Positions 14,717-60,761 of a stretch of 64,000 nt of DNA are shown here, in pieces; position 1 is the stretch's first letter, and each line of letters opens with the position of its first letter. This stretch comes from Phaeosaccion multiseriatum. Its lineage: Eukaryota; Protista; Ochrophyta, other classes. The DNA lies in assembly GCA_965112735.1 (NCBI GenBank), contig OZ218952.1:248001-312000 (forward strand), written 5' to 3'. The notes below the pieces were generated by a model that was not told where the DNA came from, searched no databases, and saw only the letters and a list, made by a program, of their open reading frames with translations. Made by a program: the position numbers and the translations under genes.

Positions 14717-16327
14717 TTAATACCCGCCCCTCTGATAACCGCCACCCCCCCCTCTCCTGCCGCTGTCGCCCCCGCCCCTGCTCCGCCACGCGCCCCCGCC
14801 TCCTCTGCGATCGTCGTAGCTATTCCGCCCTCCTCCGCCGTAGTACCCCCCCCCGCCTCCTCCTGCCCCCCCCCCCCCCCCAAACGGCCTGTTGTCTCTT
14901 CGCATCCCCCCCATACCCCCCCTGCCACCCCTGTCGCTCTCCCACCGCCGATCGGGCTGTGGCCGCTTCCTCTCCTCGGCGGCCTTCTTCTTGGCCGCAA
15001 CTTGGTCCTCAGTGAGCGGCAGGTAGTATAGAGCGGGCTTTGTCGTCGTCTTACGGAAGAGGTCGTCGAGGGAGAAGGGTGGAGGCTCGTCTTGCTCTGC
15101 AGGGGCTGCCCCCGAGCCCCGCCTCTCCCTCTCCAGCGCCGCTCTCTTGCTTGCAGACACAAAACCCTCCCCGTCATCTGCTCGCAGGCGCTTTCCTGGC
15201 TTCTGCTGTTGCTGTTGTTGCAGCAGGAGCTGTTGCTGCTGCCGTTGCTGGAGGATGGCAGCGTCCCTGCCCCCCGGCTTTGCGGCCGCCGCGCCGCGCA
15301 ACTCTCCCTCCTGCCGATGAAACGCCTCCGAGGCGGTCACCCCCTCCAGCACTACAGCGTCTAGCATCTTGGGGTTGAAGTCCGGCCATTTGAGGCCCTG
15401 CAGCGCCGCCTTTGCCCGCAGGGCCGCTTCCCTGCTGGGAAGCGTTGCGAAGGCGTGTGTCTTAATTTTGTTCATGAAAAATTGCCCCTCCTCACAGCTG
15501 CACCCCGCCTTCTCCTCGATGAATTTCTGTACCGCGGAAAGTGTAATGGGCCGTGAGAAGTTGGACACTTTGATAGTGAGGCTTCCACCTTGACCGCCAC
15601 CGTCGTCCTCATTCGCATCGGCAGCGGTCGTTGTGGCATCCTCGTCCGCCAGTGCCGCTTCCGGGGCTTCTTCTTCTGGCTCTCCTTGTCCCTTCTGTTT
15701 TGACGCTTTGCTACTATCACCCCCACCAGTCCCGCGGCCTGAGTTACTTTTGCCATTCGAAGTAGGGGCTGCTTTGGGTTCTTCCGTGGTCATTAAATCT
15801 GGCGGTGCGGCTTCCTCGTCGTCTTCTCCAATAAGGTCCCCCAAGCTCGCCCCCCCCACTGCTGCTGCCTCTGGAGCAGCAGGGGCTTTCTTTGACTTGC
15901 CCCCCTTCTTTGCGCTTTTCTGTTCCACTGCCGTGCGACTTTTGTCCTTCGTGTCCTTCTTGGCCTCTCCTGCTGCGACCTCCTTTCCCTCAGCCTCAGC
16001 CTCAGCCTCCGCCTTTGTTGATGCTGGCTCAGCCTGCTTTGCTCTCTTCGTCTCTTCAGGCTGCTTTTCACTCTTCGATTTTGCGGGCGTCTCTTTTTCT
16101 ACATCGGGGGCTTGCTCCTCTTTTTCCTCTTTCTCCTCATCTGCTGCCTCCGTCTCCTCCTCCTCTGCACCCCCCCCCCCCCTCTGCTGCTCCTCCAGCA
16201 CCTCGATGAGGCGCTTTGCCAGCTCGGCCTTCTTCATCTTCCCCGTGACGGGCGCGCCTAAGCTGCTGAGCTCGGCCTTGAGCTTTGCCACGGTTAACCC
16301 CCCCACCTCATCGATCCCCACCCCCAT
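14717..16327 (-). CDS. ACIN1: Acinus homolog (SAP + RRM + RSB motif; ASAP/EJC-associated), intronless
   Basis: SAP domain LTVAKLKAELSSLGAPVTGKMKKAELAKRL; Acinus-type RRM (VSNFSRPIT...NKIKTHAF...LQGLKWP); RSB motif LDDLFRKTTTKPALYYLPLT; RGG-rich tail. Confidence 0.92.
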   Translation of the reverse strand: MGVGIDEVGGLTVAKLKAELSSLGAPVTGKMKKAELAKRLIEVLEEQQRGGGGAEEEETEAADEEKEEKEEQAPDVEKETPAKSKSEKQPEETKRAKQAEPASTKAEAEAEAEGKEVAAGEAKKDTKDKSRTAVEQKSAKKGGKSKKAPAAPEAAAVGGASLGDLIGEDDEEAAPPDLMTTEEPKAAPTSNGKSNSGRGTGGGDSSKASKQKGQGEPEEEAPEAALADEDATTTAADANEDDGGGQGGSLTIKVSNFSRPITLSAVQKFIEEKAGCSCEEGQFFMNKIKTHAFATLPSREAALRAKAALQGLKWPDFNPKMLDAVVLEGVTASEAFHRQEGELRGAAAAKPGGRDAAILQQRQQQQLLLQQQQQQKPGKRLRADDGEGFVSASKRAALERERRGSGAAPAEQDEPPPFSLDDLFRKTTTKPALYYLPLTEDQVAAKKKAAEERKRPQPDRRWESDRGGRGGMGGMRRDNRPFGGGGGAGGGGGGYYGGGGRNSYDDRRGGGGAWRSRGGGDSGRRGGGGGYQRGGY

Positions 16328-16609
16328 GATTTGCCCTGTCGAAGAAACCACGCCTGTCCCTTGTTTCCTCTTTCCACCGCAGCTGCTGCTGCAGGGGCGG
16401 CAAGCACTACTGCTCCTGCTCCTTCTCCCGCTCCTGCTCCTCCTGTTCTTGCAGATCTGTTTGTTTTTTGTGTTCTATAATCGCCTGTAAAGATTGTGTA
16501 ATCACGGGAAAGGGGCACGCACCCGCTCAGATGGCACTTCGCGGCGAAAAGCCCCCCCCCCCTTTTTCTTTTTCCCTCGTTCTGCCATCCCCCTCTAGAC
16601 AGGGCTGGG

Positions 16610-23064: not shown

Positions 23065-24368
23065 TCACGCATGGAGCAAGTCCAGCAGGGCCGAGGCCGT
23101 GACCTGCACCCCTCCCCCTTCACCAAGCTCGCTGAACACCCCCGCCGAGCCAGTGAAGTCCTGGGCCTCTGTGGAGGAGGTGGTGGTGATGACGCACTTC
23201 ATACCGGCCCCCATCGCCGCCTGCAGCCCAATCACAGAGTCCTCCACCACCATGCAGCGCTGCGGGGAGAGGCCTAGCTTCTCGGCCGCCAGTGAGTAGA
23301 TCATGGGGTGGGGCTTCCTCTCCGGCACGTCGTCGCCAGCCAAGATGAGTTCGAACTTGTCTAGCTCAGTCTGCCCCAGGAGGTTGTCCAGCACAAAGAG
23401 GCACGCGTCTTTGGTGCTCGCTGAGCAGATGGCTAGCTTGGGGGTCGGGCTCAAGCTCAGGGCCTCGTCAATGACGCGCTTGATCCCTGGCAGGCAGGCA
23501 GGCGGGCAAACAGGCATGCAGACAGGCAGACAGGCAGACGGGGCAGACAGTCAGATAGGCCGACAGGCAGACAGATAGACAGACAGGCAGACAAGCAGAC
23601 GGACAGGCGACGGAGTCACGCAGTGCCCCTCTCATTCGGGAGGGATAGCGAGTACCTACCTGGCCGCAGCGTAGCCACCCCATTCCGCACAAAGTCCTTG
23701 TAGATTTCCGTCTTCCGGTCCTGCAGCTCGTCCACGAGCGTGGCCTGTGCCTCCTCCGAGTCCGGGGCGGGGCCGAGCTTCGAAGAAGGCCAGCCGTTCT
23801 CGCCAAAGTAGTATCGCATCTTGGGCTTTCCGCCACCCACTCTGCATGGGGTAGGTAGGTGTTCGGTTGTCTGTCAGTCAGCTCTCAATTCCATGTCTCC
23901 ATTGCACTACTCAACTTGTTTTGCAGCTCGTCATAGTACTCCGGCGACCAATTGTAGGCCACGTCGAACTCTTTGAAGACGGTGTTGTAGGCCTCGCGGT
24001 GCAGGGACTCGGACTGTGCAAGGGCATGAAGCAAAAGGTGCAACACTTACTTGATCATGTATCATCACCCACCATGTGTATCATGGAAATACCTCAAGAA
24101 TGACTCCGTCGCAATCAAAGATAAGAGCCCACTCCTTCGACTCCCCTTCCGCAGCTGCAGCCGATCTCCTGCTGGCCCCGCAGCTACCTTTGCTGTCGAA
24201 CAGGCCCACTGCCTTGCTCTGCTCGGGCGGCCGAGCATTGTTGCCACAACAGGGCGACCTCCTCGCCCCTGGGAGAGGCCCATGTACAAAGCCCGTCACC
24301 AGCAGAAGCTGGAACAGCCAAAGCCCCGCGAAAAGGGCATGGCCGGAGCAGCAAGCTGGAAAGAGCAT
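23065..24368 (-). CDS. cbbY: CbbY-like HAD phosphatase (xylulose-1,5-bisphosphate phosphatase type), plastid-targeted
   Basis: LIFDCDGVILESESLHREAYN...YYDELQNKVGGGKPKMRYYF...LRPG...AGDDVPERKPHPMIY...VVEDSVIGLQAA. The signal peptide ends LLLVTG|FVHGP (ASAFAP-like). Confidence 0.9.
23490..23610. repeat. (CAGA/CAGG)n tetranucleotide repeat in a CbbY intron
   Basis: Seen directly. Confidence 0.85.
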
Positions 24369-24592
24369 CTCTCTGATTGTATCATATCACATTTCGCCTC
24401 ATGGCGATCGATCCGACGACGGCGGTGAGGTGATGGTTTCATCGATTTCATCATTCGGCACAAAGCACTGCGTGTGGGGGGAGGACAGGTGTATAGGGGG
24501 GAAACATGGTGCTGGCATTGACTCAGCTCGACCCGTAAGACACCCTTCGAGAGGCTGGGCGTAGGCTTGAAGGCCAGCAAGCCGGACAGACC

Positions 24593-27500
24593 ATGGAGAG
24601 TCCTTCCCTCCTTCTACTCAGCGGGCCGGCAGCGGCGAGGGTCTACGGCGCGCGTCCCCATGTTTCGGGAATGTTGTACGGGACAGGGAGGGTTCCCGCG
24701 AGGCGACGCGGCAGCACCGCCGGCCAGCGGCGGAGGCCATATTCCGCGAGCCCATCCAGAATAAGCTATGGCACTGGCAGCCGCAAATCAAGCGGACTGG
24801 CAGGAAAAAGGAGGCTTAGCGGTCGAGAGCAGAGGGAAGGCTCCTATGATATGGGTCAGTGGTCCCCTATGGCGCTTGATGGACTGCTACGGCCGTCTGC
24901 GATGGACATGGACGGGAGCGGTGGTAAGAGAGAGGCTGTGTCGCGCCTTGTCTTTCGTCCATCTATTGCCCCTTACGTTTGCTTTTTGTCGCTTTCCTTC
25001 GTGCGTGGTTCTTCCCCCCCCCCCCCCCCAGCAGAATCTATGTTAGATGCACCGCACTGGGGCGGGGGAGGCGCGAAGGAGGGCGAGGCAGACATGCAGA
25101 GGGAAGGAGAGAGTGGCCTGAAGACACCAACACCAACAAGGCACGCATCGCTCGCCAGCGAAAGCCCGTTGATTGCCCAATCGCAGCGGCAAATCGGACG
25201 CGAGACGACCGATGTAAGTACAAGAGGCGATGGTTCCCCTCCTTTGCGATCCTTGTTTTACAAATGGATACACGACAAGCGATTCATTGTAGCTATTCGT
25301 TGTGTCGGTTGGTAACGCAGCGCTACCTCTCTTGTGTTTTGTACGATCGTATGTTAATCATTTCATGTGGCAGGACCCCCAAAATGATACCGCGGAGCTT
25401 ACCCTGCAGCGCCTGCAGCGGGAGCAGGACGCATTGAAGCAGCAACTTGCAGAGGTCGTGGGCGTGTTGCAGAGCAACAACCAGCTCAGCCTACTCGGGC
25501 TGGACGACGAGCTCGACGAAATGCATGACATGGGGGTGGCCACGCGACTCCCTCTAGTGTGTGACGACCAAGGTGGGCGGACGGCAGAGCGTGCTGCTGA
25601 GCAATTTCCCATGCGCGCTCGTCCTCGAACGGCAGGAACCAGGAGGGAGTCTATTGCGCCCTTTGCCCTCTCCTTCGACTGCACCTTTGAAGGCGCCGAG
25701 ATGGGGGCTGAAACAGTCCGAGAGCAGTACTCACGGGGCGGGGCGGCACTGAGACCCCTCGTTCCTGCACGTCCCAACACGGCGCCCTTGAGGAGAGGAG
25801 GGACAGGGCGAGGAGGGAGGGGCCGGCGAAGGATACAGCGGGCAGGCGGGCGCCCTGGGTATGCCCAGAAGCTGCAGAAGACGAGGCTCCTGAAAAGAAG
25901 ACTGAACAAGGCGCGGGAGGAGGAGGAGCAGCAGGAGCAGGAGCAGCAGCAGAAGGAGCAGCAGCAGCAGCAGGAGCAGCAGCAGCAGCAGCAGAGGAGG
26001 GGCTCATCATCAAAGAAAGGGGCAGTGGCAGACGTGGATGGCGGCCACAGCCTGGGTCCTGATCTCGGGTCGGTCGCTTCTGGCGATGAGGGTGGATCCC
26101 GGGAAGTCAAACGTTACAAGAGCATGAAGGATAGAGAAGAAGAGCGAGACCAGCAGGGAAGAAGGCTAAGAGGAGGCTCGAGGGATCACCTCTCGAGTCT
26201 GGAAAGTGCGATTGCAGAAGAAGGACTTGGTGACTTGCAGCAGAGCGGACCCGTCCAATATGGGTCAGTGCAGTATGAGGAGTGGGAGCAGCCAGAATCC
26301 CACACGCACTGCAACTCTTTCTCTCGAGAAGGGTCCGGAGGGACTGCAGAGGCGGTCGGAGAGGGAGAGAGAGAGGGAGAGGCGAGGGCCGACTTCGCCA
26401 TTGGCCCCTACGGAAATTGCCCGGCCCGCACGCACTCTCGAGGGGACCACAGACTCCTGAGTATGTGGTGCAGAGCGTATGACGACGGAGAGAGGGACGG
26501 AGCCTTCGCAATGTTCGCGATTCGAGACGGCCCCGGAGGAGGGGGGCGAGTGAGGGGGGCGATTGTTGCTTCTGCTGCAGCTTCTGCTTCTGCTTCAGGA
26601 GCCTACCCTTCGACTTCAACTTCCCACAGGACGGGAAGCGATGGAGCAGGAGGAGGAGGAGGAGATGGGCGAAGAGCCTCCTCCTTCGCCTTGCCACCAC
26701 GGCGACCCCCCAAGGTAGGGGATCGCGTCAGGGTAAACTACAAGGGTCGCGGCCAGCACCACCGGGCATGTGTAGTGGACAAGCGAGGCGAAGGTCTGTT
26801 CGACGTTCGCTACGACGACGGGGAGGAGGAGCTCCACGTTAAGGCAGCGTACATTCAAGGCATACCAGGGACACTACATCTCGGGGCGGAGGGGGGTGAG
26901 ACAGAGGAGCACGGAGGGTCTGGAGGAGGGGCACCGTGGGAGAAGGGCATGCGAGTCGAGGTGAGCGCGTTGAGAAGTGACGAGAGAGCGTGGGGAAGAG
27001 AGGGGAGGGGAGGGGAGGGAGAGGAAGGCGGGCGGGCGGGCGGTGCCGCCGTGGCACTGCGCCGTTAGTCTTTCCATCGTTCCGGTGGCTTTGTTTTTTG
27101 ACGGAGTCGTGTCCGGAGCTCTGACCTCTCTCTCTCATGTGATACTTGTACTAGTAATTCTTTTTTTGTACTAGTAGTACTAGTACTAGGGAAGATCGTG
27201 CTCCTTCTCTGTGCTGCCGTCCTGACGCAAGATGTCCTTTGCCCTCTGTGCGTGGGTGCTGATGTTACCGCTACTGCTTCTACTACTGCTGCTGGTGGTG
27301 GTCTTGTTGGGGGCAGGCGAACTATCGAGAGGAAGGCCGTCTCAGGCGCGGGACCGTGTCGCGCATCTATGGCGACGGAACCTTCGACGTGGATTACCAA
27401 CACGGCAAGAAGGAGCGCAGGGTGCGAGGGAGCCTCATTCGAGACTGCAGGACAGAGGATGAGCGAGCGGCGGCGTGGGAGCACTGGCGAAAGCAGGAGA

Positions 27501-27961
27501 AGGACCAATCGCGGACAGAGAGGGGTGGGGGTGGAGGGGTGAGGAATCACCACAGCAGTGCGATGTCGTCTGTGTCTTCCCTTGACACGAGCCACATGTG
27601 GGACGAATTCATGGTTGGCGACGACGTGGAGGTGGACTATCAGGGGAAGGGAAGGTGGTATGCGTGCACCATCGTGCAGGGCCTGACAAGGGCTGCTGAG
27701 GACGAGAGGGAGGAGGGTACGTTCGTCGTCCAATACCAAGACACAGAGCGAGAGACGCGCGTGCCAGTGGACCGCATCAGACGCAGAAGAGAGCGCCCGA
27801 CGGCCCTGGGAATGGGGATAGGTGGGCTGGCAGTACAAGGGAGGGGAGGAGGAGGAGGACGTGCAGTAGTAGGACCAGCAGCAGCAGGAAGATCAGTTGG
27901 TGATACATCCGCCGCTCGTGAGGTGGAAACCGAGGAGGAAGAGCTACAGCTGAGCTCTTCT

Positions 27962-28002
<41 letters not shown>

Positions 28003-31000
28003 GACTTTGAAGAGGGGGGCGAAAGTGGAGTGCCGGATCCATTCTCGCTACTATCCTGCCACGATATCTCGCGTCCACAGGGACGGCACCTTCGATGTCC
28101 TTTACACGGACGGAGAGAAGGAGAAGGGCGTCGAGCGAAGGAGGCTCCGAGGGCGGACAAGCCCCCTTGGGGAAGCTCCGAGCCCAAGGGGGCGTGGTGG
28201 GAAAGGGAAAGCGAAAGGGTTCTCCCAAGGCCCTTCCCAAGGCCCGCCCCCCCAAGGGGAAGAGGAGGGCTCTACCTGTTACTCGGACGATGGGCAGTGG
28301 GAGAACGACGAAGCGGAAATCGAGGCAGACAAGGAGGGGCAGGTCAACTTTGATGATGATGATGATGATGATGATATCGATGATGACGACTCTGCTCCGC
28401 TGTCCTCGCTGCTGTCGGTAGGGGACGGGGTGGAGGCGCAGTTTCGAGGCGAGGGCAAGTGGCTGAGAGGGCACGTCCTGTGGGAAAATGGGGACGGCTC
28501 CTACGCGGTGCAGTACTGCGACAAGGAGCGGGAGATGAGCGTGCGCTCCGAGCACATCAGGCCTCCGACCCGGGCCAGTGGAGCCTCTGTGGGGCCGGCT
28601 GGTGCTGCTGCTGCGGCGGCTGCTGCTGCTGCTGCTGCTGGTGGTGGTGGTGGTGGTGGTGGTGGAGCAGGAGGCAAGGGCGTCGTCCTCTTCTCCAAGG
28701 GGATGAAGGTCAAGAGCCGCCTCGCTGGGCACAGTCGCTTCTACCCCGCCGTCGTGTCTCGGGTGCACAGCGACGGCTCGTGTGACGTGACGTACTTTGA
28801 CGGAGAGAAGGAGCGGCGTGTCCCGCCAGCCCTCCTGCAAGCGCGAAGCAGCAACGCCCCACAACAACAGCAAGCACACCAACAACAGCCACAAGGAGAG
28901 GGAGAAGCGCTTGTCAGCGATGAAAGCTCCGCGTCTCTGGTTTCGTCCTTCCAAGACTTTTGGGATACCTTCCGCGTGGGAGAGAGGGTAGAGGCCGACT
29001 ACGAAGGGCAAGGGCGATGGTACTCCGCCAGAGTGGTGAAGCTGTGCCCCAAGACATCGAGATACGTCGTGCAGTACGCTGACACGGAGAGAGAGCGTGA
29101 TGTGCCTGCCGACCGCATCCGATCAGCGTCGGGGAGGAGGCCATCGAGCCAGCTTCAGCCGCCCAGTGCCCGACAAGCAGAAGAGGAAGGCTCAGGCGGT
29201 GCACACGCTGCAGGGCGCGGGGAGGACATGGCGACTTTGGCCCCTGGTACGGCGGTGGAATGCAAGATTCACTCCCGCTACTACCCGGCCACAGTGGCTC
29301 GTGTGCGCAGCGACGGTACCTACGATGTTAGGTACGAGGACGGAGAGAGGGAGGCGGCAGTGCCTGCGGGGAGGATTCGCGCCGCGCCTTGGAGGAGGGC
29401 TGACAGCGGCAAAGACAGCAGGGATGGTCATGGAAGTCGCCGCATCAGCACCAGCAACAGTAACGGCAGCTTCGTCAGCATCAGCAGCAGCGTGAGGGGC
29501 GACACCTTCTCCTCCCCCTTCTCTTCTCGAGACGGACGTTTCGACACCGCCGCAATCATGCTCGACACAGACGCCAAGGAGGACGACTTTGCCGTGGGAG
29601 ACACCGTGTGTGCAGACTACAGAGGAGAGGGGAGATGGTATAGGGGCATAATCAAGAGGGAGAGCGACGATGGCTCCGGCTACCTCGTGCAGTACCTCGA
29701 CTCGGAAAGGGAGTACGTACCACTCGACCGCATCCGGGCCCCGGAGAGAGGAGGCGAGCACGGCGGTGGGCCGAGAACACCGAGCAAGCGAGACGGCACT
29801 GCTACTGCTACAATGGAGGATGAGCCACCGACGAAGATTGTCGAGGTGGGGACGAAGGTGAAGTGCCGCCTCGGTGGACATAGTCGCTTCTACCCTGCCA
29901 CAGTGTCCTGCATTCACGCGGATGGGACGTGCGACGTGACGTACTTTGACGGGGAGAAGGAGAGGGGAGTTGAGCCGGCCCTCCTGCGTTCGAGAGGTAG
30001 TGGAGCGGCCGTCGCTTTGGGTGCCCCGACGGAGGAGGCGATCGAGGAGCAGCCTTCTCGTGCGTCTTCGTTCGATGATATTTGGACGGACTTCCGCGAG
30101 GGGGAGAGGATAGAGGCCAACTACGAAGGGCAGGGGCGATGGTACCCCGCCAGAGTGGTGGAGCTGTGCCCCAAGACCTCGAGCTACGTCGTGCAGTACG
30201 CTGACACGGAGAGAGAGCGTGATGTGCCTGCCGACCGCATTCGATCATCGCCAGCGAGGCGCCAGTCCATCCAGCCGCCTGTCGAGGAGTGCGCCAATGA
30301 GCCGACCGATCTGGTGGAGGTGGACATGGAAGTGAAGGGCAGGCAGGGCGGTCACACACGCTACTACGCCGCTGTGGTCACGCGCATTCATCGCGACGGG
30401 ACGTGCGACGTCACCTACTACGACGGCGAGTGCGAGGCGAGGGTCCCGCTGGAGCTGCTGCGTGCGAGGAATACCGGCAGAAAGCTGCGCTGGAAGGACG
30501 GAGGCAGGGAGGACCAGCGTCAGCTGGCGTCGTCGCCTTCTGTGACCTCGTCCGGATTCGAAGAGGTGTGGGAGGACTTCCGGGTCGGTGACATGGTGGA
30601 GGCGAACTACCGAGGAGAGGGGCGCTGGTACCGAGGCAGGCTTGTGGACAGGAGCGACAACGGCTCCGAGAGGGTCTTCGCAGTGCAGTATGACGACAAA
30701 GAGAGGGAAGTGCGTGTGTCTGAGGACCTCATTCGCCCGGTGGGGAGAGGGAAGGCCAGCGACAGCAGCAGAGCCGAGGCCGGGGAGGGAAGCGAGCGAG
30801 AAGCAGTAGTCTTCGAGCGAGGCATGGAGGTGGAGTGTAGGCTGGGGGGGCACTCCCGCTACCACGCAGCCACCATCTCGCGCGTACACACCGACGGAAC
30901 GTGCGATGTGGTGTATGACGACGGCGATCGCGAGTCGAGGGTCTCACCGCAGCTCATGCGCGACAGGAGAACAGGCAAGGCCTTCGGAGCCACGCGCCCT

Positions 31001-34000
31001 CGACAGAGCGAGGAGACTGAGGGGAACGCCGAGGGGCGCGACGGCCTCTCTGACTCATCACTCGGCGATGAGGAGATGTGGGACGAGTGGAGGGTGGGAG
31101 AGGCGGTGGAGGTGGACTACAGAGGGCAGGGGCGGTGGTACGCCGCCACGCTCATCGGAAAGCAGCCCTGGGACGGCGGGGCGGCCTCTTACGCGGTGCA
31201 GTACGCCGACAGAGAGAGAGAGAACGACGTCTCTGGCGACCGCATCAGACATGCCACTCGCCGCAAGGAGGAGGGCCGGCAGAGGAAGCAGGAAGTGGAG
31301 GATCAGGAGCCCTTCTCGGTGGGTGATGAGGTGGAGTGCCGCCTCGGTGGGCACAGTCGCTTCTACCCCGCCGTCGTGTCTCGGGTGCACAGCGACGGCT
31401 TGTATGACGTGACGTACTTTGACGGAGAGAGGGAGAAGGGAGTCGCGCCAACCCTCCTGCGTTCGAGAGACAGTGGAGCGGCCGCCTTGCTCGGTACCCC
31501 TACCGCCGAGGCGATCGAGGAGCAGCCCTCTCTGACGTCTTCGTTCGATGATTACTGGGATACCTTCCGCGTGGGGGAGAGGGTAGAGGCCGACTACGAA
31601 GGGCAGGGGCGATGGTACCCCGCCAGAGTGGTGGAGCTGTGCCATAAGACCTCGAGCTACGTCGTGCAGTACGCTGACACGGAGAGAGAGCGTGGTGTGC
31701 CTGCCGACCGCATTCGATCATCGCCAGCGAGGCGCCAGTCCATCCAGCCGCCTGTCGAGGAGCGCGCCGATGAGCCGACCGACCTGGTGGAGGTGGACAT
31801 GGAAGTGAAGGGCAGGCAGGGCGGTCACACACGCTATTATGCCGGTGTGGTCACGCACATTCATCGCGACGGGACGTGCGACGTCACCTACTACGACGGC
31901 GAGTGCGAGGCGAGGGTCCCGCTGGAGCTGCTGCGAGCGAGGAACACCGGCAGGAAGCTGCGCTGGAAGGAGGGAGGCAGGGAGGACCAGCGTCAGCTGG
32001 CGTCGTCGCCTTCTGTGACCTCGTCCGGATTCGAAGAGGTGTGGGAGGACTTCCGGGTCGGCGACATGGTGGAGGCGAACTACCGAGGAGAGGGGCGCTG
32101 GTATCGAGGCAGGCTTGTGGACAGGAGCGACAACGGCTCCGAGAGGGTCTTCGCAGTGCAGTATGACGACAAAGAGAGGGAAGTGCGTGTGTCTGAGGAC
32201 CGCATTCGCCCGGTAGGGAGAGGGAAGGCCAGCGACAGCAGCAGAGCCGAGGCCGGGGAGGGAAGCGAGCGAGAAGCAGTAGTCTTCGAGCGAGGAATGG
32301 AGGTGGAGTGTAGGCTGGGGGGGCACTCCCGCTACCACGCAGCCACCATCTCGCGCGTACACACCGACGGAACGTGCGATGTGGTGTGTGACGACGGCGA
32401 TCGCGAGTCGAGGGTCTCACCGCAGCTCATGCGCGACAGGAGAACAGGCAAGGCCTTCGGAGCCACGCGCCCTCGACAGAGCGAGGAGACTGAGGGGAAC
32501 GCCGAGGGGCGCGACGGCCTCTCTGACTCATCACTCGGCGATGAGGAGATGTGGGACGAGTGGAGGGTGGGAGAGGCGGTGGAGGTGGACTACAGAGGGC
32601 AGGGGCGGTGGTACGCCGCCACGCTCATCGGAAAGCAGCCCTGGGACGGCGGGGCGGCCTCTTACGCGGTGCAGTACGCCGACAGAGAGAGAGAGAACGA
32701 CGTCTCTGGCGACCGCATCAGACATGCCACTCGCCGCAAGGAGGAGGGCCGGCAGAGGAAGCAGGAAGTGGAGGATCAGGAGCCCTTCTCGGTGGGTGAT
32801 GAGGTGGAGTGCCGCCTCGGTGGGCACAGTCGCTTCTACCCCGCCGTCGTGTCTCGGGTGCACAGCGACGGCTTGTATGACGTGACGTACTTTGACGGAG
32901 AGAGGGAGAAGGGAGTCGCGCCAACCCTCCTGCGTTCGAGACACAGTGGAGCGGCCACCTTGGTCGGTACCCCTACCGCCGAGGCGATCGAGGAGCAGCC
33001 CTCTCTGACGTCTTCGTTCGATGATTACTGGGATACCTTCCGCGTGGGAGAGAGGGTAGAGGCCGACTACGAAGGGCAGGGGCGATGGTACCCCGCCAGA
33101 GTGGTGGAGCTGTGCCATAAGACCTCGAGCTACGTCGTGCAGTACACTGACACGGAGAGAGAGCGTGGTGTGCCTGCCGACCGCATTCGATCATCGCCAG
33201 CGAGGCGCCAGTCCATCCAGCCGCCTGTCGAGGAGCGCGCCGATGAGCCGACCGACCTGGTAGAGGTGGACATGGAAGTGAAGGGCAGGCAGGGCGGTCA
33301 CACACGCTACTACGCCGGTGTGGTCACGCACATTCATCGCGACGGGACGTGCGACGTCACCTACTACGACGGCGAGTGCGAGGCGAGGGTCCCGCTGGAG
33401 CTGCTGCGAGCGAGGAACACCGGCAGAAAGCTGCGCTGGAAGGAGGGAGGCAGGGAGGACCAGCGTCAGCTGGCGTCGTCGCCTTCTGTGACCTCGTCCG
33501 GATTCGAAGAGGTGTGGGAGGACTTCCGGGTCGGTGACATGGTGGAGGCGAACTACCGAGGAGAGGGGCGCTGGTACCGAGGCAGGCTTGTGGACAGGAG
33601 CGACAACGGCTCCGAGAGGGTCTTCGCAGTGCAGTATGACGACAAAGAGAGGGAAGTGCGTGTGTCTGAGGACCTCATTCGCCCGGTAGGGAGAGGGAAG
33701 GCCAGCGACAGCAGCAGAGCCGAGGCCGGGGAGGGAAGCGAGCGAGAAGCAGTAGTCTTCGAGCGGGGAATGGAGGTGGAGTGTAGGCTGGGGGGGCACT
33801 CCCGCTACCACGCAGCCACCATCTCGCGCGTACACACCGACGGAACGTGCGATGTGGTGTATGACGACGGCGATCGCGAGTCGAGGGTCTCACCGCAGCT
33901 CATGCGCGACAGGAGAACAGGCAAGGCCTTCGGAGCCACGCGCCCTCGACAGAGCGAGGAGACTGAGGGGAACGCCGAGGGGCGCGACGGCCTCTCTGAC

Positions 34001-37000
34001 TCATCACTCGGCGATGAGGAGATGTGGGACGAGTGGAGGGTGGGAGAGGCGGTGGAGGTGGACTACAGAGGGCAGGGGCGGTGGTACGCAGCCACGCTCA
34101 TCGGAAAGCAGCCCTGGGACGGCGGGGCGGCCTCTTACGCGGTGCAGTACGCCGACAGAGAGAGAGAGAACGACGTCTCTGGCGACCGCATCAGACATGC
34201 CACTCGCCGCAAGGAGGAGGGCCGGCAGAGGAAGCAGGAAGTGGAGGATCAGGAGCCCTTCTCGGTGGGTGATGAGGTGGAGTGCCGCCTCGGTGGGCAC
34301 AGTCGCTTCTACCCCGCCGTCGTGTCTCGGGTGCACAGCGACGGCTTGTATGACGTGACGTACTTTGACGGAGAGAGGGAGAAGGGAGTCGCGCCAACCC
34401 TCCTGCGTTCGAGACACAGTGGAGCGGCCACCTTGGTCGGTACCCCTACCGCCGAGGCGATCGAGGAGCAGCCCTCTCTGACGTCTTCGTTCGATGATTA
34501 CTGGGATACCTTCCGCGTGGGAGAGAGGGTAGAGGCCGACTACGAAGGGCAGGGGCGATGGTACCCCGCCAGAGTGGTGGAGCTGTGCCATAAGACCTCG
34601 AGCTACGTCGTGCAGTACACTGACACGGAGAGAGAGCGTGGTGTGCCTGCCGACCGCATTCGATCATCGCCAGCGAGGCGCCAGTCCATCCAGCCGCCTG
34701 TCGAGGAGCGCGCCGATGAGCCGACCGACCTGGTAGAGGTGGACATGGAAGTGAAGGGCAGGCAGGGCGGTCACACACGCTACTACGCCGGTGTGGTCAC
34801 GCACATTCATCGCGACGGGACGTGCGACGTCACCTACTACGACGGCGAGTGCGAGGCGAGGGTCCCGCTGGAGCTGCTGCGAGCGAGGAACACCGGCAGA
34901 AAGCTGCGCTGGAAGGAGGGAGGCAGGGAGGACCAGCGTCAGCTGGCGTCGTCGCCTTCTGTGACCTCGTCCGGATTCGAAGAGGTGTGGGAGGACTTCC
35001 GGGTCGGTGACATGGTGGAGGCGAACTACCGAGGAGAGGGGCGCTGGTACCGAGGCAGGCTTGTGGACAGGAGCGACAACGGCTCCGAGAGGGTCTTCGC
35101 AGTGCAGTATGACGACAAAGAGAGGGAAGTGCGTGTGTCTGAGGACCGCATTCGCCCGGTAGGGAGAGGGAAGGCCAGCGACAGCAGCAGAGCCGAGGCC
35201 GGGGAGGGAAGCGAGCGAGAAGCAGTGGTCTTCGAGCGGGGAATGGAGGTGGAGTGTAGGCTGGGGGGGCACTCCCGCTATCACGCAGCCACCATCTCGC
35301 GCGTACACACCGACGGAACGTGCGATGTGGTGTATGACGACGGCGATCGCGAGTCGAGGGTCTCACCGCAGCTCATGCGCGACAGAAGAACAGGCAAGGC
35401 CTTCGGAGCCACGCGCCCTCGACAGAGCGAGGAGACTGAGGGGAACGCCGAGGGGCGCGACGGCCTCTCTGACTCATCACTCGGCGGTGAGGAGATGTGG
35501 GACGAGTGGAGGGTGGGAGAGGCGGTGGAGGTGGACTACAGAGGGCAGGGGCGGTGGTACGCAGCCACGCTCATCGGAAAGCAGCCCTGGGACGGCGGGG
35601 CGGCCTCTTACGCGGTGCAGTACGCCGACAGAGAGAGAGAGAACGACGTCTCTGGCGACCGCATCAGACACGCCACTCGCCGCAAGGAGGAGGGCCGGCA
35701 GAGGAAGCAGGAAGTGGAGGATCAGGAGCCCTTCTCGGTGGGTGATGAGGTGGAGTGCCGCCTCGGTGGGCACAGTCGCTTCTACCCCGCAGTCATCTCC
35801 TACGCCTATCGAAGCGGTGGGTACGACGTGGTCTACACGGATGGAGAGGAGGAGGACGGAGTGGATGCGAGCCTTGCGCGAGCGAGGACGACTGGTCAGC
35901 GGAGTCGTGCGTATGTCAACAAGAGCGGGAAGGGCACCGACAGAGAGCCTTTAGATGGCTCTGAGGAGGGCATTGAGGCCTTCAAAGTAGCCAAGAAAGC
36001 GGCCAATGCGGCGGTGCGAGGAGCAACGGAGCGGGTGGGAGAGTCGAGACGGAAGCAAGAAGCCCAAGTGTCGAGTGTGGCCAGCACTCCCAAGCCTATA
36101 CCACCCTCCACGCTGGTGAGGACCAGCAGAGAAATTGCCATAGGCAACATCAGAGCCTTCGTGGCGAAAGAGAAGGAGGCAGAGGCAGCAGCAGCAGCAG
36201 CAGCAGAAGCAGTGGACGATGGACCCGCCTCGGCTACATCCCGCTCCCCCTCCGCCCTCTCTTTCGACTATGAAGACAACAGAGACAGCTTCGACTCCAA
36301 GGCTCAGACTCAGACCCACCCACAGGCTCGGCGAGAAAAGAGGGCCGGAGATGACGACCACGGCGATCTCCAAGAAGCATCACTCTTCGCTGAGTATGAT
36401 GAATATGATGATGATGACGACGCGCGGGACGGCAGCTTCTCAGAAAAGGCCTCCCCGAGGCCTCGGCATGCCAAGACGGGCAAGCCTGGCAAGACTGGCA
36501 ATGGTCGACAGGCTCCCCGACGTCTACGCACCGGCGCTCGGGTACAAGTTGACTATCAAGGGACGGGGCAGTGGTACCCTGGCTTTATCGCCTCCAGTGA
36601 GAGACGAGACGGTACGTGGGACATTCGATACGACGACGGAGAGGAGGAGTACGGTGTACACACCAGTGCAGTGCGTAGACTTGAAGAGGAGGGGGAGCTG
36701 GGGGGTGAGGATCAGGAGAAGGAGGGCGAAGCGGTGGAGGAGGTGGAGGAGGGCCGGGGGGAGGAGGACGTGTCCGTTGCTGGCGCTGGCCCCGCGTCCG
36801 TGTCGAGGCGAGGTCGTGGAGCAGGCGGGTTGCGCAAGGGGGACTCGATTCTGGTGGACTACCACTGCACAGGCGACTTGTACCCGGCCACCATTGTCTC
36901 GAGTGAGAGACGCGACGGCACGTGGGATGTGCTGTATGAGGACGGGGAAGAGGAGCGAGGCGTTCGTGCGCGAGACATTCGCAGAGTCGTCGGTGGGGAA

Positions 37001-37777
37001 ACAGCAGCGACCACAACGCAGCAGCAGGAGCAGCAGCAGCAGCAAGAGGAGGAGACGGGGCGACCCGAGCGTCCTTGGAGCTCTCCTCCTCCTCCTTCTA
37101 CCTCTCCTCTGTCGAGCTTGTCTCCCAACAAGCGGAGGCCGCTCACTCGTAGGCCTGAGCGAAGGGCGCCCGAGCCACGAGACTCCCCTTCTCAAGAGGA
37201 CAGCTCCGACGGCGGTGGAGAGGCTCCAGCCGGAAGAGGAGAAGGAGGAGGGGGAGGAGAAGGGGTGGCACGGCACCCTCAGAGGCCTTCAAAGCGGCAG
37301 GCCGGGCTCACCCCGAAGAGGCCTGCCACCGCCCCCCGGGGGAGGGCACAGATGGAGAGGCGACAGCAGGGGAGGCCGGAATCCGCAAGGGAGGAAAGCC
37401 GGAAACGACCGCGCGGTGAGGACGTGGAGAGGTGGGGAGGAGGAGGAAGAGGAAGAGGAGCAGGAGACGAAGGCGTCACCAGCCAAGATGAGGAGGATGC
37501 ACGGATGATTGGAGAGCAGGAAGAGCCTGAGAGGCACAGGCCTGCTGCGGCCAAGAGGCGCTTCGCCGCAGGCACGCCGGTGATGGCCAACTACGGAGGG
37601 CTGGGAGAGTGGTTCCCGGCCGTGGTGGAGCAGCGACGAGAGGTGGCTCCGGCACGAGGGGGCGGCAGACAAGACAAGGGGCACGAGGAGAGGCGGTGGG
37701 TCTATGACGTGCGGTATGAGGATGGGGACTCCGAGTCGAGAGTGCGCGAGAACAGGCTGAGGGCCGTCGGAGCTTGA
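24593..37777 (+). CDS. Giant (~4,185 aa) protein with 37 Tudor/Agenet-like barrels; exons 24593-24923, 25035-25213, 25374-26960, 27317-37777
   Basis: ORFs 24593-25315, 25302-27068 and 27356-37777 join in frame through GT-AG introns. One barrel is split by the last intron (WEKGMRVE|ANYREEGR). The repeated module F.VG..VE..Y.G.GRWY.A.V......Y.V.Y.DGE.E..V....IR matches LBR-type Tudor/Agenet barrels. The N-terminal exons are less certain than the large exon. Confidence 0.85.
29858..35795 (+). repeat. Coding tandem super-repeat: 4 x 1473 bp (491 aa, 6 Tudor-like domains each) plus the start of a 5th copy
   Basis: Unit starts at 29858, 31331, 32804, 34277 and 35750 (spacing exactly 1473). The shadow ORFs recur at the same period. 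Confidence 0.97.
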
Positions 37778-39238: not shown

Positions 39239-41255
39239 CTACCCCAGCGCGCGCTGTGCGGCGGTAAATCCTGTGAAGATGGCCGCGTTCACGGGAACTG
39301 CGCGTGCGAGGGAGGGGATGTACCCCTTGAAAAAGGTCTTAAAGCCGCCCTCTGCCATAGTCTTTTTGAAACAGTCCGCCACGCTCGAGAAGGCTCGCTT
39401 GGAGGGCTCGAGATGGTCGCCCTGTGGAGTGGTGCGGAGTGGTGATGTGTGGTGGTGGTGGTGTGTGTTGTGTGTTGTATTGTGTTGTGGTGTGGTGTGG
39501 TGTGGTGTGGTGTGGTGTGGTGTGGTGTGTGGTGGTCATGGGCAGACACGGAAAACGGGAAGAGACACGGGTCGAAAGGGAAATGAGAGGCATCGAGGCG
39601 GGCGGTGGGAAAGGTCAGTCAAGGGGAAATATGGGCGGAGCTACGCGCAGATAGAGAAACACACACACACACACACGGGGAGAGAGGGTAAGGAAGACTT
39701 CCCCGTTTCTGAAAGATCCTGAAAGGAGGCTCTCTCGGCAACGTTCCCATCCCCATCACCTCGTCACCTAAATGCCATTCGCACCCCCAGCCAGTCCATC
39801 GAAGCAGGGACATTACTCCGTCGCTCTTACAGCACGCCACAGGTAGGAAGGACACTTTGCAAACAGAAAGGACCCAAGACTGACTGACTCGCCAAGGGGC
39901 AATGAACACGCCACCGCAACACGTCCTACAACGCACTGCCACAAAAGCTTCAAGCCGGCGAAGAGACCGCTCTCCACAGTACCCAAACAAGCGACACCGC
40001 TTACATGGGAGAGGAGCGGGAGTCTCACAGCACACACTCACTTGCTACACTCACACCACCACACACTCGCTGAGCTCACACCACACGACCGAGACTGGCT
40101 CAGCTCAGCTCTCACCTGCATGCGTGTCTTGATGGTCTCTAATGGGTACCACACCCCCCAAAAGCCAAAGCCTGCCGCCCCTCCGGCCACAAAGCATGCT
40201 CCCAGAGAGGGCTGCTCCCCCTTCTTCGCGAGCGCCTTCTTGGTCCCTTCAAACGCTGCAAAGTACCCCCCAAAGCAGGGGACGTTCCGCAGCATGGTGG
40301 CTGCGAAGCCCTGGTAGATGCCCCTCACGCCCTGCCCCGCCCACACCTGCTTTCCACAGTCCAGCACGCCGGCGTACTGCCCCTTGCCCACCTGGGCCTG
40401 CAACTTGATCTTGAAGAGATCCACGGGCGCCTCCACAATGGTAATGGGGATGGCAGCCAATGACCCCGCGGCGTAGTGCTGCGGTACTGTGAGCTCCCCC
40501 CCCTTGCCCACGATCTTCTTGGCTTCATTGTGGCAGAAGAACACGCCTGCGTTGTGGGCCATGGCTCCCAACAGAGGCGAGGCGGCGCCTGCATACAAGC
40601 CGGCCACCCCTTCCTTAGCCACTGTCTTCCTAAACACATCCGCCATGCCCGTAAACTCGGGGTTGGTGGAGCTTTGCGTCTGAAGGCGCACTTTGATGGT
40701 GTCTAGTGGGTGTCCAGCAGCGACCTGGGGAGATGGGTTGTAGGGGGTAGGGGAAAGGGAAGAGAAGGGACGGACATCATCGGAGGGGTGGTGTGAGGAA
40801 AACCAACCGCAACAGCAGCAGCACCAGGAGGAGAAGGAGGAGGAGGAGGAGGAGGAGGAGAAGGACGATGAAGTCAGCTTGCGGGGGGAGAGAAAGAGGG
40901 GGGTAGAGGTGTGGTATGGCATAGTGGCGCATCGTATGGTGGGCCTTGGGTGTGACACGCTGCTCTCTGTGAGTTGAGAGAGGGGCTCGTCTCCCTTGCA
41001 AATACAAATCAAAGGGTGTGGGAGGAGCGGGTAGACGAAGTGCGTGGAGATGAAGAGGACTCAAAGCAGGAGAAGCACTTGTGGAGATGGGAGGTGTGGA
41101 GAAGGAAAGAAGAGGGGAGTGGAAGGGAGAGGAGGGAAAACGAAAAAAGGAGTGTGGAAGGAGAGAAGACGGGGACCCCTGACACGCACCTGAGCGAAGC
41201 CTGCAACTGTTCCAGATAGAATGGTTTTGACGGGAGATCCATCGCTGCCGCCCAT
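39239..41255 (-). CDS. Mitochondrial carrier (SLC25), carnitine/acylcarnitine / basic amino-acid carrier group (3 exons)
   Basis: Three PX[DE]XX[KR] motifs (HPLDTIKVRLQ, APVDLFKIKLQ, YPLETIKTRMQ) plus LRNVP and LARAVPVNAA. The last exon (39239-39421) reads GDHLEPSKR...AQRALG*. Confidence 0.93.
39440..39535. repeat. (GTGTG)n microsatellite at the 3' end of the last carrier intron (CACAC on the sense strand)
   Basis: Seen directly. Confidence 0.9.
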
Positions 41256-47168: not shown

Positions 47169-50100
47169 GGGTGTCAGGCCAGAGAGAGCATGTCCGAGGG
47201 GGTGGGTCTCAGGACAGAGGGTGTCAGGACAGAGAGATAGAGAGCATGTCAGGACACACAGAGAGAGAGAGAGAGTGTGTGAGCATGCCCGAGGGTATCA
47301 GGACAGAGGGTGTGAGGACAGAGGTTGTCAGGAGAGAGAGAGAGGGAATCATATAAAAGGAGTGGGTGTCATGACACACCTGGTTGTGGTGATTAACCAC
47401 ACAGAGATGCCGCAATCCCATCGTACGGAAAAGACGGTAAGTGCGGATGACACTTGCTGACTCGTTAATGACATAGGGGGCGGTGTTGACGTAGGGCCGC
47501 AAGTCGATCCAGCACTGACGGTCTTCGTGCGCGATGTCGAGGTCTTGAATGTTGGGGTAGCGTGGGTACATCTGTGCGCAGGAGCAGGGGCATGCAGCAG
47601 CGGCAGGGGCGGCAGTGGGAGGAAGGAAGGAAGGAAGGAAGGAGGGAGTGGGAGGCGGACAGATCGCAAAGCGGTTTGGCGGAGAACGAGGTGGCGCGGG
47701 CGGGGTGAAGAGAGAGGGGGACGAGGAGTTTTACGCCTCGCTCGCTCGCTCCCTCCCTTCCCCTTCTCTTCTCCTTCTCTTACCCATGCATGCCTGAAGG
47801 ACGGGTGGATAGCAAGACCGACACCCGACCCACTCACCTTCTCGAGTGCTCCGTAACTGATGAGCGGGCTCACTCTCCTCTGCGAGTGCGTGTCTGCATT
47901 TGGCGACGCAAAAGCCCTCTTCTGGATGAGTACTGTTATCACCTTACGAAGTACGCTGCCCACGAGCACCCCTCCAGCCTCCATGTCCACCACAGGGAAG
48001 CAACCGTGCTTAAGGGGGGGATGGGGACAGGCAGTGGAGGGGGAGAGGGGGGAGAGGAGGGGAGGGGATGGGACAGAGCGGAGGACAGACAAAAGGGCTT
48101 CGTTGGTAAGCTTCCGAGGAAGGAAGGAAAGAAGGAAGGAAAGAAGGGAGGGAAACATGGGGTAAGACGGGGGCAAGAGAGAGCGAGGGAGGATACAACG
48201 AGAGGCAGGCAGGGAAAGAGAGGATATACGGGAATAGGCAAAGGAAGAAAGAAAGGAAGTGAAAGAGGGAAGGCATTATGTAACCACACGTAAAAGTAAC
48301 GGTACGTACGTCGGTATTCCGGAGCATGTCGTACACAAAGCCCACCCTCTCGATGGGGCGAAGGCACTTGATGTTCCGGCTCATGGCCTGGCTCGCCGTC
48401 ATGTCACAGCGACGAACCAACACGGGCGCGTCCTCCTCCAGGAAAGGAAGTTTCTTGAGGTGTATGTGTATGTCATAAAGGCCCTCGTTGAACACGTTCC
48501 CCACCCAGCGGGCAGTCATGACGGTGAGCATAAGCGGCAGGACATACTGCATGTTGCCAGTCGCTTCGAGGAGGATAACCGTCAGGCTGATGGTCATCCT
48601 ATGCAGGGAAGGGGGAGGCGAAGTGAAGGAGAACGTGTGTGTATGTGAAAGAGAGAGAGAGAGTCCTTGGGACGCGCTTGCTCCGTAAGAGATCTTCCTT
48701 CCCTCCGGATAACAATGTGTGGTGTATATCCTCTCTCACGCCTCTCTCTCTCTCTCTCTCTCACGCCGCTGCGTGCGTACATACCTTGCCATCCCTCCCA
48801 ACGCAGCCGCCGCTCCGATGAGTGCGTAAGTGCCCGAGTCAGCAAAGTGACCGTTAGTGTCATCGAGCTTGTGCAACAAATGACCACACAGACGCCCGAA
48901 GGCCGCCCCGGAGAGCAGGCTCGGCACAAACAGACCCGAGGGCACTGCAATGCCATATGTGAGCATTGCCATAAATGTATAGGGCACGAAGAAGAGGAAG
49001 AGCGCTCCTGAGGAGAAGGTGAGTTCGTCTCGTTCGCCGGACTCGCGGTAGTGGAAGAGCTGGCGGATGGCGGTGTCTGCGTCCGTGAAAAATAGGCTTG
49101 CAACTTCGTTGTACTCCGTCTGGTAGTGTGAGCAGAGGAGGGGGAGGGGAGGAGAGGAGAGAAGGGAGGGGAGAGGAGAAGAGAGAAGGAGAGAAAGGGC
49201 GTGGAGGGGACGGGATGGGAAGGGAGGAGAGAGGAAAGGAGAGAAGGGGAGATGAGAGAGAAAAGGGAGAGGAGAGGAGAGAAGGGGGGGGAGGAAGAGA
49301 GAAGAGGAGACAGGAGCCAGAGAGGAGGTGAGGGGATAGAGAAGGGGACAGGAGAGGAGAGCGGGAGATGAGGATAGAGAAACAGAGTATTGCGCACGGG
49401 GCGGGAGAAGTAGATGACCGATGTCCACTCCTCATATGTCCAATTCCCTTCCCTCTCCCGCTTCAAAGTGAACATACACACCAACCTGATCCAATCAATA
49501 CCAATACACTCAACACACACGGCACCACCGTACCCACCAACCTGAGGATCGCAATTGAAGCTGACAAGCTCGTCCACCAGCGTCTTTTCCTGCTCGCTCC
49601 AGTCCTCCATATTCACAGGCTTGGGTGTGCACTGCCCCCACAACACAGGCATGGCGAAGGACACAAAACTCATGAGAAAGGCCACCCCCAGTGCCTCGAC
49701 GAAGCGCGCCAAGATGCCCCTGGCCCTCCGTTGCCGCCAGCGCGTAAGTCTCTCGTTGAGGAAGTTAAAGCAGGCTCCAATGAGACCCCCCATGCAACCA
49801 AGGAGGATGAACAGCCACAGCTCCCATACGCTGTAGTTACCGTGGCCGGAGTTGTACTCGGTAAACTCCCCGAAAGAAAACATTTTGCTCAGCTCCTGCT
49901 GGCCCCAGAGGTTGGCGCTGTTTTTGACTGCGTACAGCGTAAAGACCGTGGTCATGGCACAAAAGAAAGCCCTCCAAGTGAGCTTGGTGTTCCAGAACGA
50001 AGCGCCCTCCTCAAGTGCAAAGAGCACCCCCCCGATGGGCGCTCCGAAGGCGGCCGCCACCCCCGCTGAGGCACCACACGCCACAAAGTCGCGCTTTTCG

Positions 50101-60501: not shown

Positions 60502-60534
<33 letters not shown>

Positions 60535-60761
60535 CCTCCCCCTCCTCTCCCTCTGTCCTGTCATCCGCCCCTGTTCAGGTCGGGCGCCCAGACCTTTGGG
60601 AGCTCCTGAGCGCCGAGAAGCGTCGTGCGGAGGAGAAGAAGCGTGGGTGTGTGCGCGTACTGGCCAGCGGTCCTGACGCCATGGTGAAGGAGTGCGTGCG
60701 TGCGGCGAGGGACATCGACTGGAAGCTCTTCGCCGTGGAGGAGTTCTCATTCGAACTGTAG
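56630..60761 (+). CDS. Ferric-chelate reductase (FRE/FRO, ferric reductase/NOX superfamily), multi-exon
   Basis: LLPVSR...GVSFERAVLYHKLVGH; haem His pairs H-x13-H and H-x12-H; FAD motif EAHAFSV; DGPY; LVTGGSG; VHLIWCTR; GRPD; ASGP; C-terminal EEFSFEL. No EF-hands. Two extra TM segments lie inside the NADPH domain, as in plant FROs. Confidence 0.92.

Follow-up and report, generated by a model that had tools for sequence, protein, structure and literature searches.

A predicted giant gene of the alga Phaeosaccion multiseriatum for a chain of 37 Tudor/Agenet barrels with strict alternation of two barrel types

Introduction

A stretch of 64,000 nucleotides from Phaeosaccion multiseriatum (GenBank assembly GCA_965112735.1, contig OZ218952.1, positions 248,001 to 312,000), referred to here as the window, carries on its + strand a giant open reading frame (ORF) composed almost entirely of Tudor/Agenet-like barrels. 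A first-pass annotation of the sequence described one spliced gene for a protein of about 4,185 aa, in which most of the barrels alternate between two types, A and B. The locus raises the question of whether such a protein is really encoded, what its barrels would bind, and whether their regular order reflects a function or the way in which the array has grown. The reported architecture is confirmed, except for the 5' exon. The product is slightly more probably than not a flexible, very-high-valency reader or scaffold for methylated ligands, and the order of its barrels looks mainly like a record of duplication. All coordinates are positions in the window.

Barrel content and alternation

The Pfam scan of the ORF detected only families of the Tudor clan and no catalytic domain. 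Agenet (PF05641) was matched at an E-value of 3.5e-90 and 296.9 bits (cut-off 27) in 18 separate stretches, and further matches were obtained to Tudor_3 (Crb2), SGF29_Tudor, Tudor_5 (SETDB1), DUF4537 and TUDOR. A hidden Markov model (HMM) trained on the barrels of the window identified, within the ORF, 35 complete barrels and, at its very start, the C-terminal half of another, as well as one complete barrel upstream. The total comes to 37 once the half barrel, D02, is completed by splicing, so that both the count and the lack of a recognisable catalytic domain agree with the first-pass annotation. The barrels are 56-60 aa in size and are spaced 70-95 aa from one to the next.

Barrels D03-D34 follow the order (A B) x16 with zero exceptions, which is the unbroken alternation of domains 3-34 that had been reported. 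In the maximum-likelihood tree of the barrels, the 16 A barrels form one branch (ultrafast bootstrap (UFBoot)/Shimodaira-Hasegawa-like approximate likelihood ratio test (SH-aLRT) support of 96/95) and the 16 B barrels form another (97/93), as predicted, and barrels D01 and D35-D37 lie outside both clades. Three subclades are present within A and three within B, and they match the positions in a six-barrel unit described below. The motifs given earlier for the two types are correct, including tyrosine or phenylalanine at the first cage position of type A as opposed to leucine, isoleucine or glutamine in type B. When single barrels were submitted to Pfam, subtypes A1 (29.5 bits) and A2 (27.8 bits) passed the Agenet cut-off.

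The linkers inside the super-repeats measure 15-19 aa from A to B and 28-36 aa from B to A, and the A-to-B linkers reach up to 37-69 aa in the older part of the array. The linkers are predicted to be disordered, and they are charged, rich in Ser, Gly and Ala, and near neutral in net charge. An acidic W-x-x-[FW] motif (DDYWDTF, EEVWEDF and EEMWDEW are examples) lies just before strand 1 of the type-A barrels, for example at 31544-31570, 32030-32056, 31067-31093 and 27587-27613. This motif is kept in most A barrels and is absent from B, and it was not confidently structured in the models described in the next section.

Fold and flexibility of the barrels

Two constructs were modelled with AlphaFold2 (AF2), namely D17-D18 for the A-to-B order and D16-D17 for the B-to-A order, using shallow multiple sequence alignments of 9-10 paralogous pairs and no predicted aligned error (PAE). 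Five strands per barrel were predicted in both constructs with a predicted local distance difference test score (pLDDT) of 72-87, and A and B are thus both five-stranded SH3-like barrels in the predicted structures. Single barrels were superposed on solved Tudor domains by VIA-align with Z scores of 8.8-9.7 and a root-mean-square deviation (rmsd) of 1.1-2.1 Å over 52-63 residues. The B barrel matched PHF1, TDRD3, PHF20 Tudor2 and SMN, and the A barrel matched LBR, SGF29 and PHF19. Together with the Pfam matches, these superpositions bear out the assignment of the barrels to the Tudor/Agenet fold.

The predicted template modelling score (pTM) was 0.39 for the A-to-B and B-to-A constructs alike, and the pLDDT of the linker was below 50. 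The best matches found by Foldseek in the Protein Data Bank were tandem Agenet/Tudor structures (ADCP1, AGDP1, SGF29, SETDB1, 53BP1, UHRF1 and FMRP; E 3e-05 to 1e-03), which align over both barrels at an rmsd of 12-14 Å and a template modelling (TM) score of about 0.35, indicating that the barrels match and that their mutual arrangement does not. No fixed two-barrel interface of the type found in 53BP1, SGF29, ADCP1 and FMRP was seen in the modelled pairs, which, with 9-10 sequences per alignment and no PAE, is a weak negative for the rigid A-B tandem unit that had been considered. The models support a flexible string of independent Tudor/Agenet barrels, with confidently predicted single barrels and disordered linkers, in keeping with the earlier phrase 'beads on a string'.

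The putative ligand pocket

The profile of the barrels was compared with solved structures, and the best match was PHF20L1 (E 2e-06), followed by SGF29, PHF20 and LBR. The residues W, Y, F and D of the PHF20L1 pocket (W97/Y103/F120/D122; spacing W-6/7-Y-17-F-x-D) align to HMM positions 18, 25, 42 and 44, respectively. A pocket of three aromatic residues plus Asp is common to PHF20L1 Tudor2, PHF20 Tudor2 and LBR and prefers histone H4 dimethylated at lysine 20 (H4K20me2), and 53BP1 has the same pocket with an extra Tyr (PMC13285377). Across 1,580 barrels from 154 proteins of the family to which the array belongs, positions 18, 25 and 42 are aromatic in 87, 83 and 98%, respectively, and Asp44 is present in 90%, Gly45 in 97% and Glu48 in 92%.

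Type A keeps Y18, W24-Y25, Y42 and D44, with Gly45 and Asp39 replaced. Type B keeps the D-G-E-x-E turn, but its position 18 is L, I or Q, its position 38 is mostly Cys, and subtype B2 has His at position 25. The complete pocket is present in 21 barrels (16 A and five canonical). At a mean net charge of about -3 the barrels are acidic; this fits basic ligands and speaks against direct binding of a nucleic-acid backbone.

Super-repeats and history of the array

Four 491-aa B-A-B-A-B-A super-repeats containing 24 barrels had been reported, and they were recovered as a direct DNA repeat whose copies start at 29819, 31292, 32765 and 34238. Barrel identity is 0.79 at a lag of six barrels and 0.34 at a lag of one. 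Copy 1 shows 93% nucleotide identity with copies 2-4, which are 98.7-99.6% identical among themselves. The substitutions between copies 2-4 number 6-19 per pair and are biased to synonymous sites, and every copy has its own changes. The ratio of non-synonymous to synonymous substitution rates (dN/dS, Nei-Gojobori) among the young copies is 0.14-0.20, with about 0.05 in the barrels and 0.65 in the linkers, on small counts. This pattern indicates that purifying selection has acted on the copies ever since their origin and that the unit is very young. The predominance of synonymous substitutions points to a translated, functional gene and speaks against the copies as assembly duplicates.

Non-synonymous differences between the young copies are few, and one of them lies in barrel D20 (32264-32443), which has Cys at HMM position 42. 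This position is Tyr or Phe in all other barrels of the window and aromatic in 98% of the 1,580 family barrels.

The strict alternation and the super-repeat are best explained by nested tandem duplication, first of two-barrel and later of six-barrel units, and on this reading they chiefly reflect how large the duplicated unit was. In this history, a canonical family barrel first gave rise to types A and B, pairs of the two were then multiplied, the six-barrel unit B3-A1-B1-A2-B2-A3 formed, and this unit was very recently amplified to four copies. The locus also provides a clean and datable case of nested duplication of domain units (2 to 6 to 24 barrels) under purifying selection.

Relatives and periodicity in the family

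A word-indexed search with the whole ORF returned only four giant proteins of 2,077-3,337 aa with 25-29% identity. A profile search of 1.84 billion cluster representatives returned 8,728 at E<1e-3, 2,922 at E<1e-10 and 667 at E<1e-30, and the largest arrays of these relatives have 35, 29 and 29 matched barrels. Named relatives include GLD98134.1 of Pythium insidiosum, DAZ98959.1 of Lagenidium giganteum, CAM9205087.1 of Laminaria digitata and CAN0234240.1 of Ascophyllum nodosum, which are annotated as hypothetical, unnamed or 'EF-hand' proteins. Related uncharacterised arrays had been expected in other stramenopiles, and oomycete and brown algal members were indeed found. A language-model look-up in the ESM-Atlas points to Oomycota and Ciliophora and is given as a lead only.

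The family signature Y-x-D-G-[DE]-x-E is kept by D01, D02, D35-D37 and type B, and type A has lost the Gly. The array belongs to an unnamed stramenopile poly-Tudor family whose members carry at least 10 signature barrels per chain. Neither the A nor the B motif, nor the window's own protein, was present among the 150 best-scoring representatives of the profile search, and the two barrel types were thus found in no other protein of this set. When the relatives were scored with A- and B-specific HMMs, they were almost uniformly 'B-like/canonical'. As they lack the A motif, type A appears to be derived and lineage-specific, and type B appears to be a canonical barrel with a degraded cage.

A higher-order period was defined as a lag greater than 1 whose barrel identity exceeds that of lag 1 by at least 0.08. 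Such a period, of 2, 3, 4, 5, 6 or 7 barrels, was detected in 18 of the 68 arrays with at least 10 barrels. One orthologous group (P0003, P0011, P0012, P0013, P0024 and P0025; 22-23 barrels) has two alternating types that cluster across proteins with SH-aLRT support of 90 and 94, which implies that the alternation predates the split of these proteins. The linker rhythm of this P0003 group is 16-22/28-39 aa, compared with 15-19 (A to B) and 28-36 (B to A) in the super-repeats of the window. A correspondence between A/B of the window and the X/Y types of the P0003 group was not established, as the tree was unresolved and the HMM scores were uninformative, in part because the sorting rule misfiled some barrels. 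In view of the periods in these arrays and the alternation in the P0003 group, the first-pass annotation, which knew of no description of such an alternating, higher-order architecture, overstated its uniqueness. In P0010, a period of 4 is nested on a period of 2. The relative P0001 (3,326 aa, European Nucleotide Archive contig ctg33301) has about 30 barrels after a SAM domain (Pfam), and a cytidine-deaminase-like N-terminus, EF-hand-like regions and RS-rich linkers were noticed by eye.

No description of poly-Tudor/Agenet arrays in stramenopiles was found in a literature search. One expression study briefly names a gene of Phytophthora infestans as having 'multiple Tudor domains'. According to a 2025 preprint, the 11 domains of Drosophila Tudor are still the highest number known in one protein.

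Gene structure and integrity

The ORF at 27356-37777 is uninterrupted, with 3,473 codons and no stop or frameshift over 10.4 kb of DNA of about 60-65% GC. The GC content at the first, second and third codon positions (GC1/GC2/GC3) is 0.67/0.52/0.73. An upstream exon is predicted to encode an N-terminal region of about 440 aa, of low-complexity and coiled-coil character with an RGG-like stretch, followed by D01 and the first strand of D02. Pfam detected in this exon the barrel and otherwise only sub-threshold noise. The donor GAG|GTGAGC after 26960 and the acceptor ...GGCAG| before 27317 are joined in phase 0, and the joint rebuilds one intact barrel D02, so that one spliced gene with 37 barrels is predicted as originally described. 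The coordinates of these features are collected in Table 1.

Table 1. Features of the array locus and neighbouring ORFs in the window
Feature	Coordinates	Strand	Description and evidence
Predicted exon 1	25365..26960	+	Frame open 25302-27068; codon-usage signal ~25350-26950; first ATG 25365
Predicted intron	26961..27316	+	356 nt, GT..AG, phase 0, splits barrel D02; AT-rich, stops in all frames
Predicted giant exon 2	27317..37777	+	Rest of D02 and D03-D37; includes ORF 27356-37777; stop codon 37775-37777
Barrel D01	26691..26867	+	Canonical type; own HMM, E 2e-16
Barrels D03-D34	27587..35890	+	Strict A/B alternation, 16 A and 16 B; own HMM, tree, motifs
Four tandem super-repeats	29819..35710	+	1,473 nt (491 aa) each, B3-A1-B1-A2-B2-A3; exact 1,473-nt spacing
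Barrels D35, D36	36503..36991	+	Canonical family type, neither A nor B; HMM, tree; D35 Pfam Tudor_5 2.2e-06
C-terminal barrel D37	37541..37771	+	17-residue insertion in strand 2-3 loop; HMM, alignment
Neighbour ORF	14717-16351	-	SAP and RSB motif (Acinus-like)
Neighbour ORF	40038-41012	-	Mitochondrial carrier
Neighbour ORF	48594-50084	-	CLC chloride channel
Neighbour ORF	59130-60761	+	Ferric-reductase NAD-binding domain

An earlier first exon had been placed at 24593-25315 on the + strand. This segment is rejected as coding, with a flat GC1/GC2/GC3 of 0.59/0.61/0.59, no frame-specific codon signal and no Pfam match; codon-usage log-odds trained on the gene itself picked no consistent frame across it. 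The protein is therefore expected to be about 4,018 aa long and not about 4,185 aa. The model 25365-26960 plus 27317-37777, with one GT-AG intron, fits better and is the most economical, and its length of 4,018 aa is counted from the first ATG in the coding-looking exon, the 5' end being predicted from sequence.

Four public runs, all from one sample, hold the locus. The short-read contigs of these runs follow the genome colinearly through the predicted intron, and the runs are thus taken to be DNA. Comparison of the contigs of these runs with 24000-29999 revealed no substitutions, and three single-contig indels of 1 nt were found in one run only. A joint from 27294 to 27839 (GT..AA, with a 21-nt side) in contigs of three of the DNA runs was rejected as an intron or a deletion allele; it is most likely an assembly-graph artefact because its ends sit in trinucleotide-repeat sequence. 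Trinucleotide runs (AGC, GCA, GCT and TGG) at 25916-25994, 27962-28001 and 28598-28665 account for tracts of poly-Q/E, poly-A and poly-G, which lie in the N-terminal exon and the early linkers. RGG-like patches are present in the N-terminal exon and around D36/D37. The neighbouring ORFs are ordinary multi-exon eukaryotic genes. Taken together, the locus appears to be a real, functional and selectively maintained gene of a stramenopile alga.

Proposed function and alternative explanations

The reading to which a little more than even weight is given is that the gene encodes a flexible reader or scaffold of very high valency for methylated ligands. Many weak, acidic pockets of the methyl-lysine (me1/me2) or methyl-arginine type on one chain would bind repeated methylated ligands, for which histone tails on nucleosome arrays and RG-rich proteins are candidates. 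The high avidity would crosslink or condense these ligands, a smaller-scale version of which is known from plant ADCP1 and from the animal Tudor/TDRD6 scaffolds. If the barrels do read methyl marks, the array proteins would be the most multivalent readers in this analysis. The effects of valency, pocket degeneration and linker length on avidity and condensation could then be tested in a natural system, and the proteins would point to a gap in knowledge of stramenopile chromatin and ribonucleoprotein (RNP) biology.

Several observations weigh against this reading. The 16 type-B barrels have no full cage, with one or two aromatics lost, so that either the effective valency is only about 21 or type B may have another role; single B barrels also stay below the Pfam Agenet cut-off. 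The tandem Tudors of PHF20L1 bind nucleosomal DNA regardless of methylation (PMC13285377), so that conservation of the pocket is no proof of methyl reading. The sole hint of a nuclear location is one KRPR-type basic patch. All four runs with the locus behave as DNA, and the super-repeats at 29819-35710 lie almost wholly beyond the part of the array covered by the comparison with read contigs.

In the main rival, the protein would work through hetero-tandem A-B modules, each made of a cage-competent and a cage-degenerate barrel on a short linker, so that 16 bivalent modules would be present and the alternation would have been selected. The losses of the two types are complementary (Gly45 and Asp39 in A; the aromatic at 18 and mostly position 38 in B), the A-to-B linkers are short and the B-to-A linkers long, and the tandem model SGF29_Tudor of Pfam spans one A plus B pair (residues 549-666). 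Among the relatives, the P0003 group alternates two types with the same short/long rhythm, clustering across proteins, and P0073 has barrel pairs on 9-aa linkers. It is this recurring rhythm that speaks most strongly for a two-barrel module, which is kept as the main rival for this reason. Set against it are the AF2 pairs, which gave the same low pTM in either order with a disordered linker and no interface, the poor fit of solved tandem Tudor/Agenet structures, the long A-to-B linkers in the older part of the array, and the failure of tree and HMM scores to link A/B to the X/Y types, and the module is accordingly given a minor share of the probability. It is about as speculative, and slightly more so, that the two-barrel rhythm might be a selected functional module of an undescribed, stramenopile-wide class of extremely multivalent readers, with a cage-competent barrel, a short linker, a cage-altered barrel and a long linker in turn, bridging regularly spaced methyl marks and organising chromatin or RNP condensates, with the present protein as an extreme of 16 modules. 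A different ligand is proposed in a further explanation, in which nucleic acid, nucleosomal DNA or protein motifs that carry no modification would be what the barrels recognise, and the protein would coat RNA or DNA or serve as an RNP scaffold. The PHF20L1 tandem Tudors show sub-micromolar affinity for nucleosomal DNA and no methyl selectivity (PMC13285377), the structural matches include a PWWP-ssDNA complex as well as PHF1-DNA complexes, the N-terminal exon and the C-terminal linkers contain RG/RGG patches, and relatives have RS-rich linkers. This explanation is nevertheless judged unlikely, as net acidic barrels joined by nearly neutral linkers are poorly suited to backbone binding and conservation in the family is strongest at the cage aromatics and at acidic residues.

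Two readings remain that concern the super-repeat itself. The near-identical units might have been mis-assembled in number, or the ORF might be unexpressed or a recently dead expansion. Three copies with 98.7-99.6% identity across 1.47 kb are hard to assemble and the reads were compared only up to 29999, but each copy carries its own synonymously biased substitutions, the frame stays open over its whole length, and a single super-repeat would still leave 19 barrels; an artefact is thus very improbable. Least probable of all is the periodic molecular ruler put forward by the first-pass annotation, or a titin-like elastic filament, in which the 491-aa super-repeat would match a periodic partner. 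The protein is very long and its six-barrel period is exact, four times over. However, the identity of the copies makes this period a product of very recent tandem duplication and not a conserved design, none of the 150 best-scoring representatives has the A or B motif and no orthologue of the same period was seen there, the periods of the relatives vary (1, 2, 3, 4, 5, 6 or 7), and the linkers are predicted to be disordered. The multivalent methyl-ligand reader remains the preferred interpretation.

Comparison with known systems

The single Tudor barrels of PHF20/PHF20L1, LBR and 53BP1 read dimethyl-lysine, for example H4K20me2. The same three-aromatic-plus-Asp layout and spacing are found in PHF20/PHF20L1 Tudor2, the LBR Tudor, 53BP1 Tudor1 and the type-A and canonical barrels of the window. 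A barrel of the window superposes on PHF20 Tudor2 with a Z score of 9.6, an rmsd of 1.2 Å and 27% identity; the Z score for LBR is 9.7. The fourth aromatic of 53BP1, Y1523, corresponds to an acidic residue in the window. These proteins carry one or two barrels beside other chromatin domains, whereas the present protein has 37 and nothing else.

Drosophila Tudor (11 domains) and vertebrate TDRD6 are long, nearly all-Tudor proteins that act as scaffolds of germ granules and condensates via methylated ligands. Their domains are extended Tudors of about 180 aa with a staphylococcal nuclease (SN)-like fold and bind symmetric dimethylarginine, whereas the barrels of the window are minimal. The barrel spacing leaves no room for an SN-like part, and Pfam TUDOR (PF00567) is matched over its core only (positions 51-101 of 121). 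Unlike that of the extended Tudors, the pocket is, by its sequence, of the Asp-containing methyl-lysine type. A titin-type super-repeat would be expected to show a domain period conserved in evolution, whereas the period here consists of young copies and no A/B orthologue was found among the 150 best representatives.

Plant ADCP1/AGDP1 contains three tandem-Agenet pairs and is a multivalent reader of methylated H3K9 that drives heterochromatin condensation (PMC6318295). Like the protein of the window, it carries repeated Agenet-type barrels in one chain, and it is among the top Foldseek matches (E 3e-05). The working principle of ADCP1 is multivalency, which is proposed here by analogy. ADCP1 has six barrels in three rigid pairs, in contrast to 37 barrels with no predicted fixed pairing, and identity is about 20%.

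The named stramenopile arrays share the barrel signature of the window, have 20-35 barrels and disordered linkers, and in some cases show a period of 2 to 7. They differ by their low identity of 25-29%, and many contain SAM, EF-hand or ankyrin domains, which the present protein lacks. Long arrays of this family number in the hundreds among oomycetes and brown algae, none of which has been studied, and the 37 barrels described here are over three times the 11 domains that the 2025 preprint gives as the record. The protein is an extreme, internally differentiated member of this unstudied stramenopile family of poly-Tudor/Agenet arrays, and it extends the idea of the multi-Tudor scaffold rather than representing a new kind of system.

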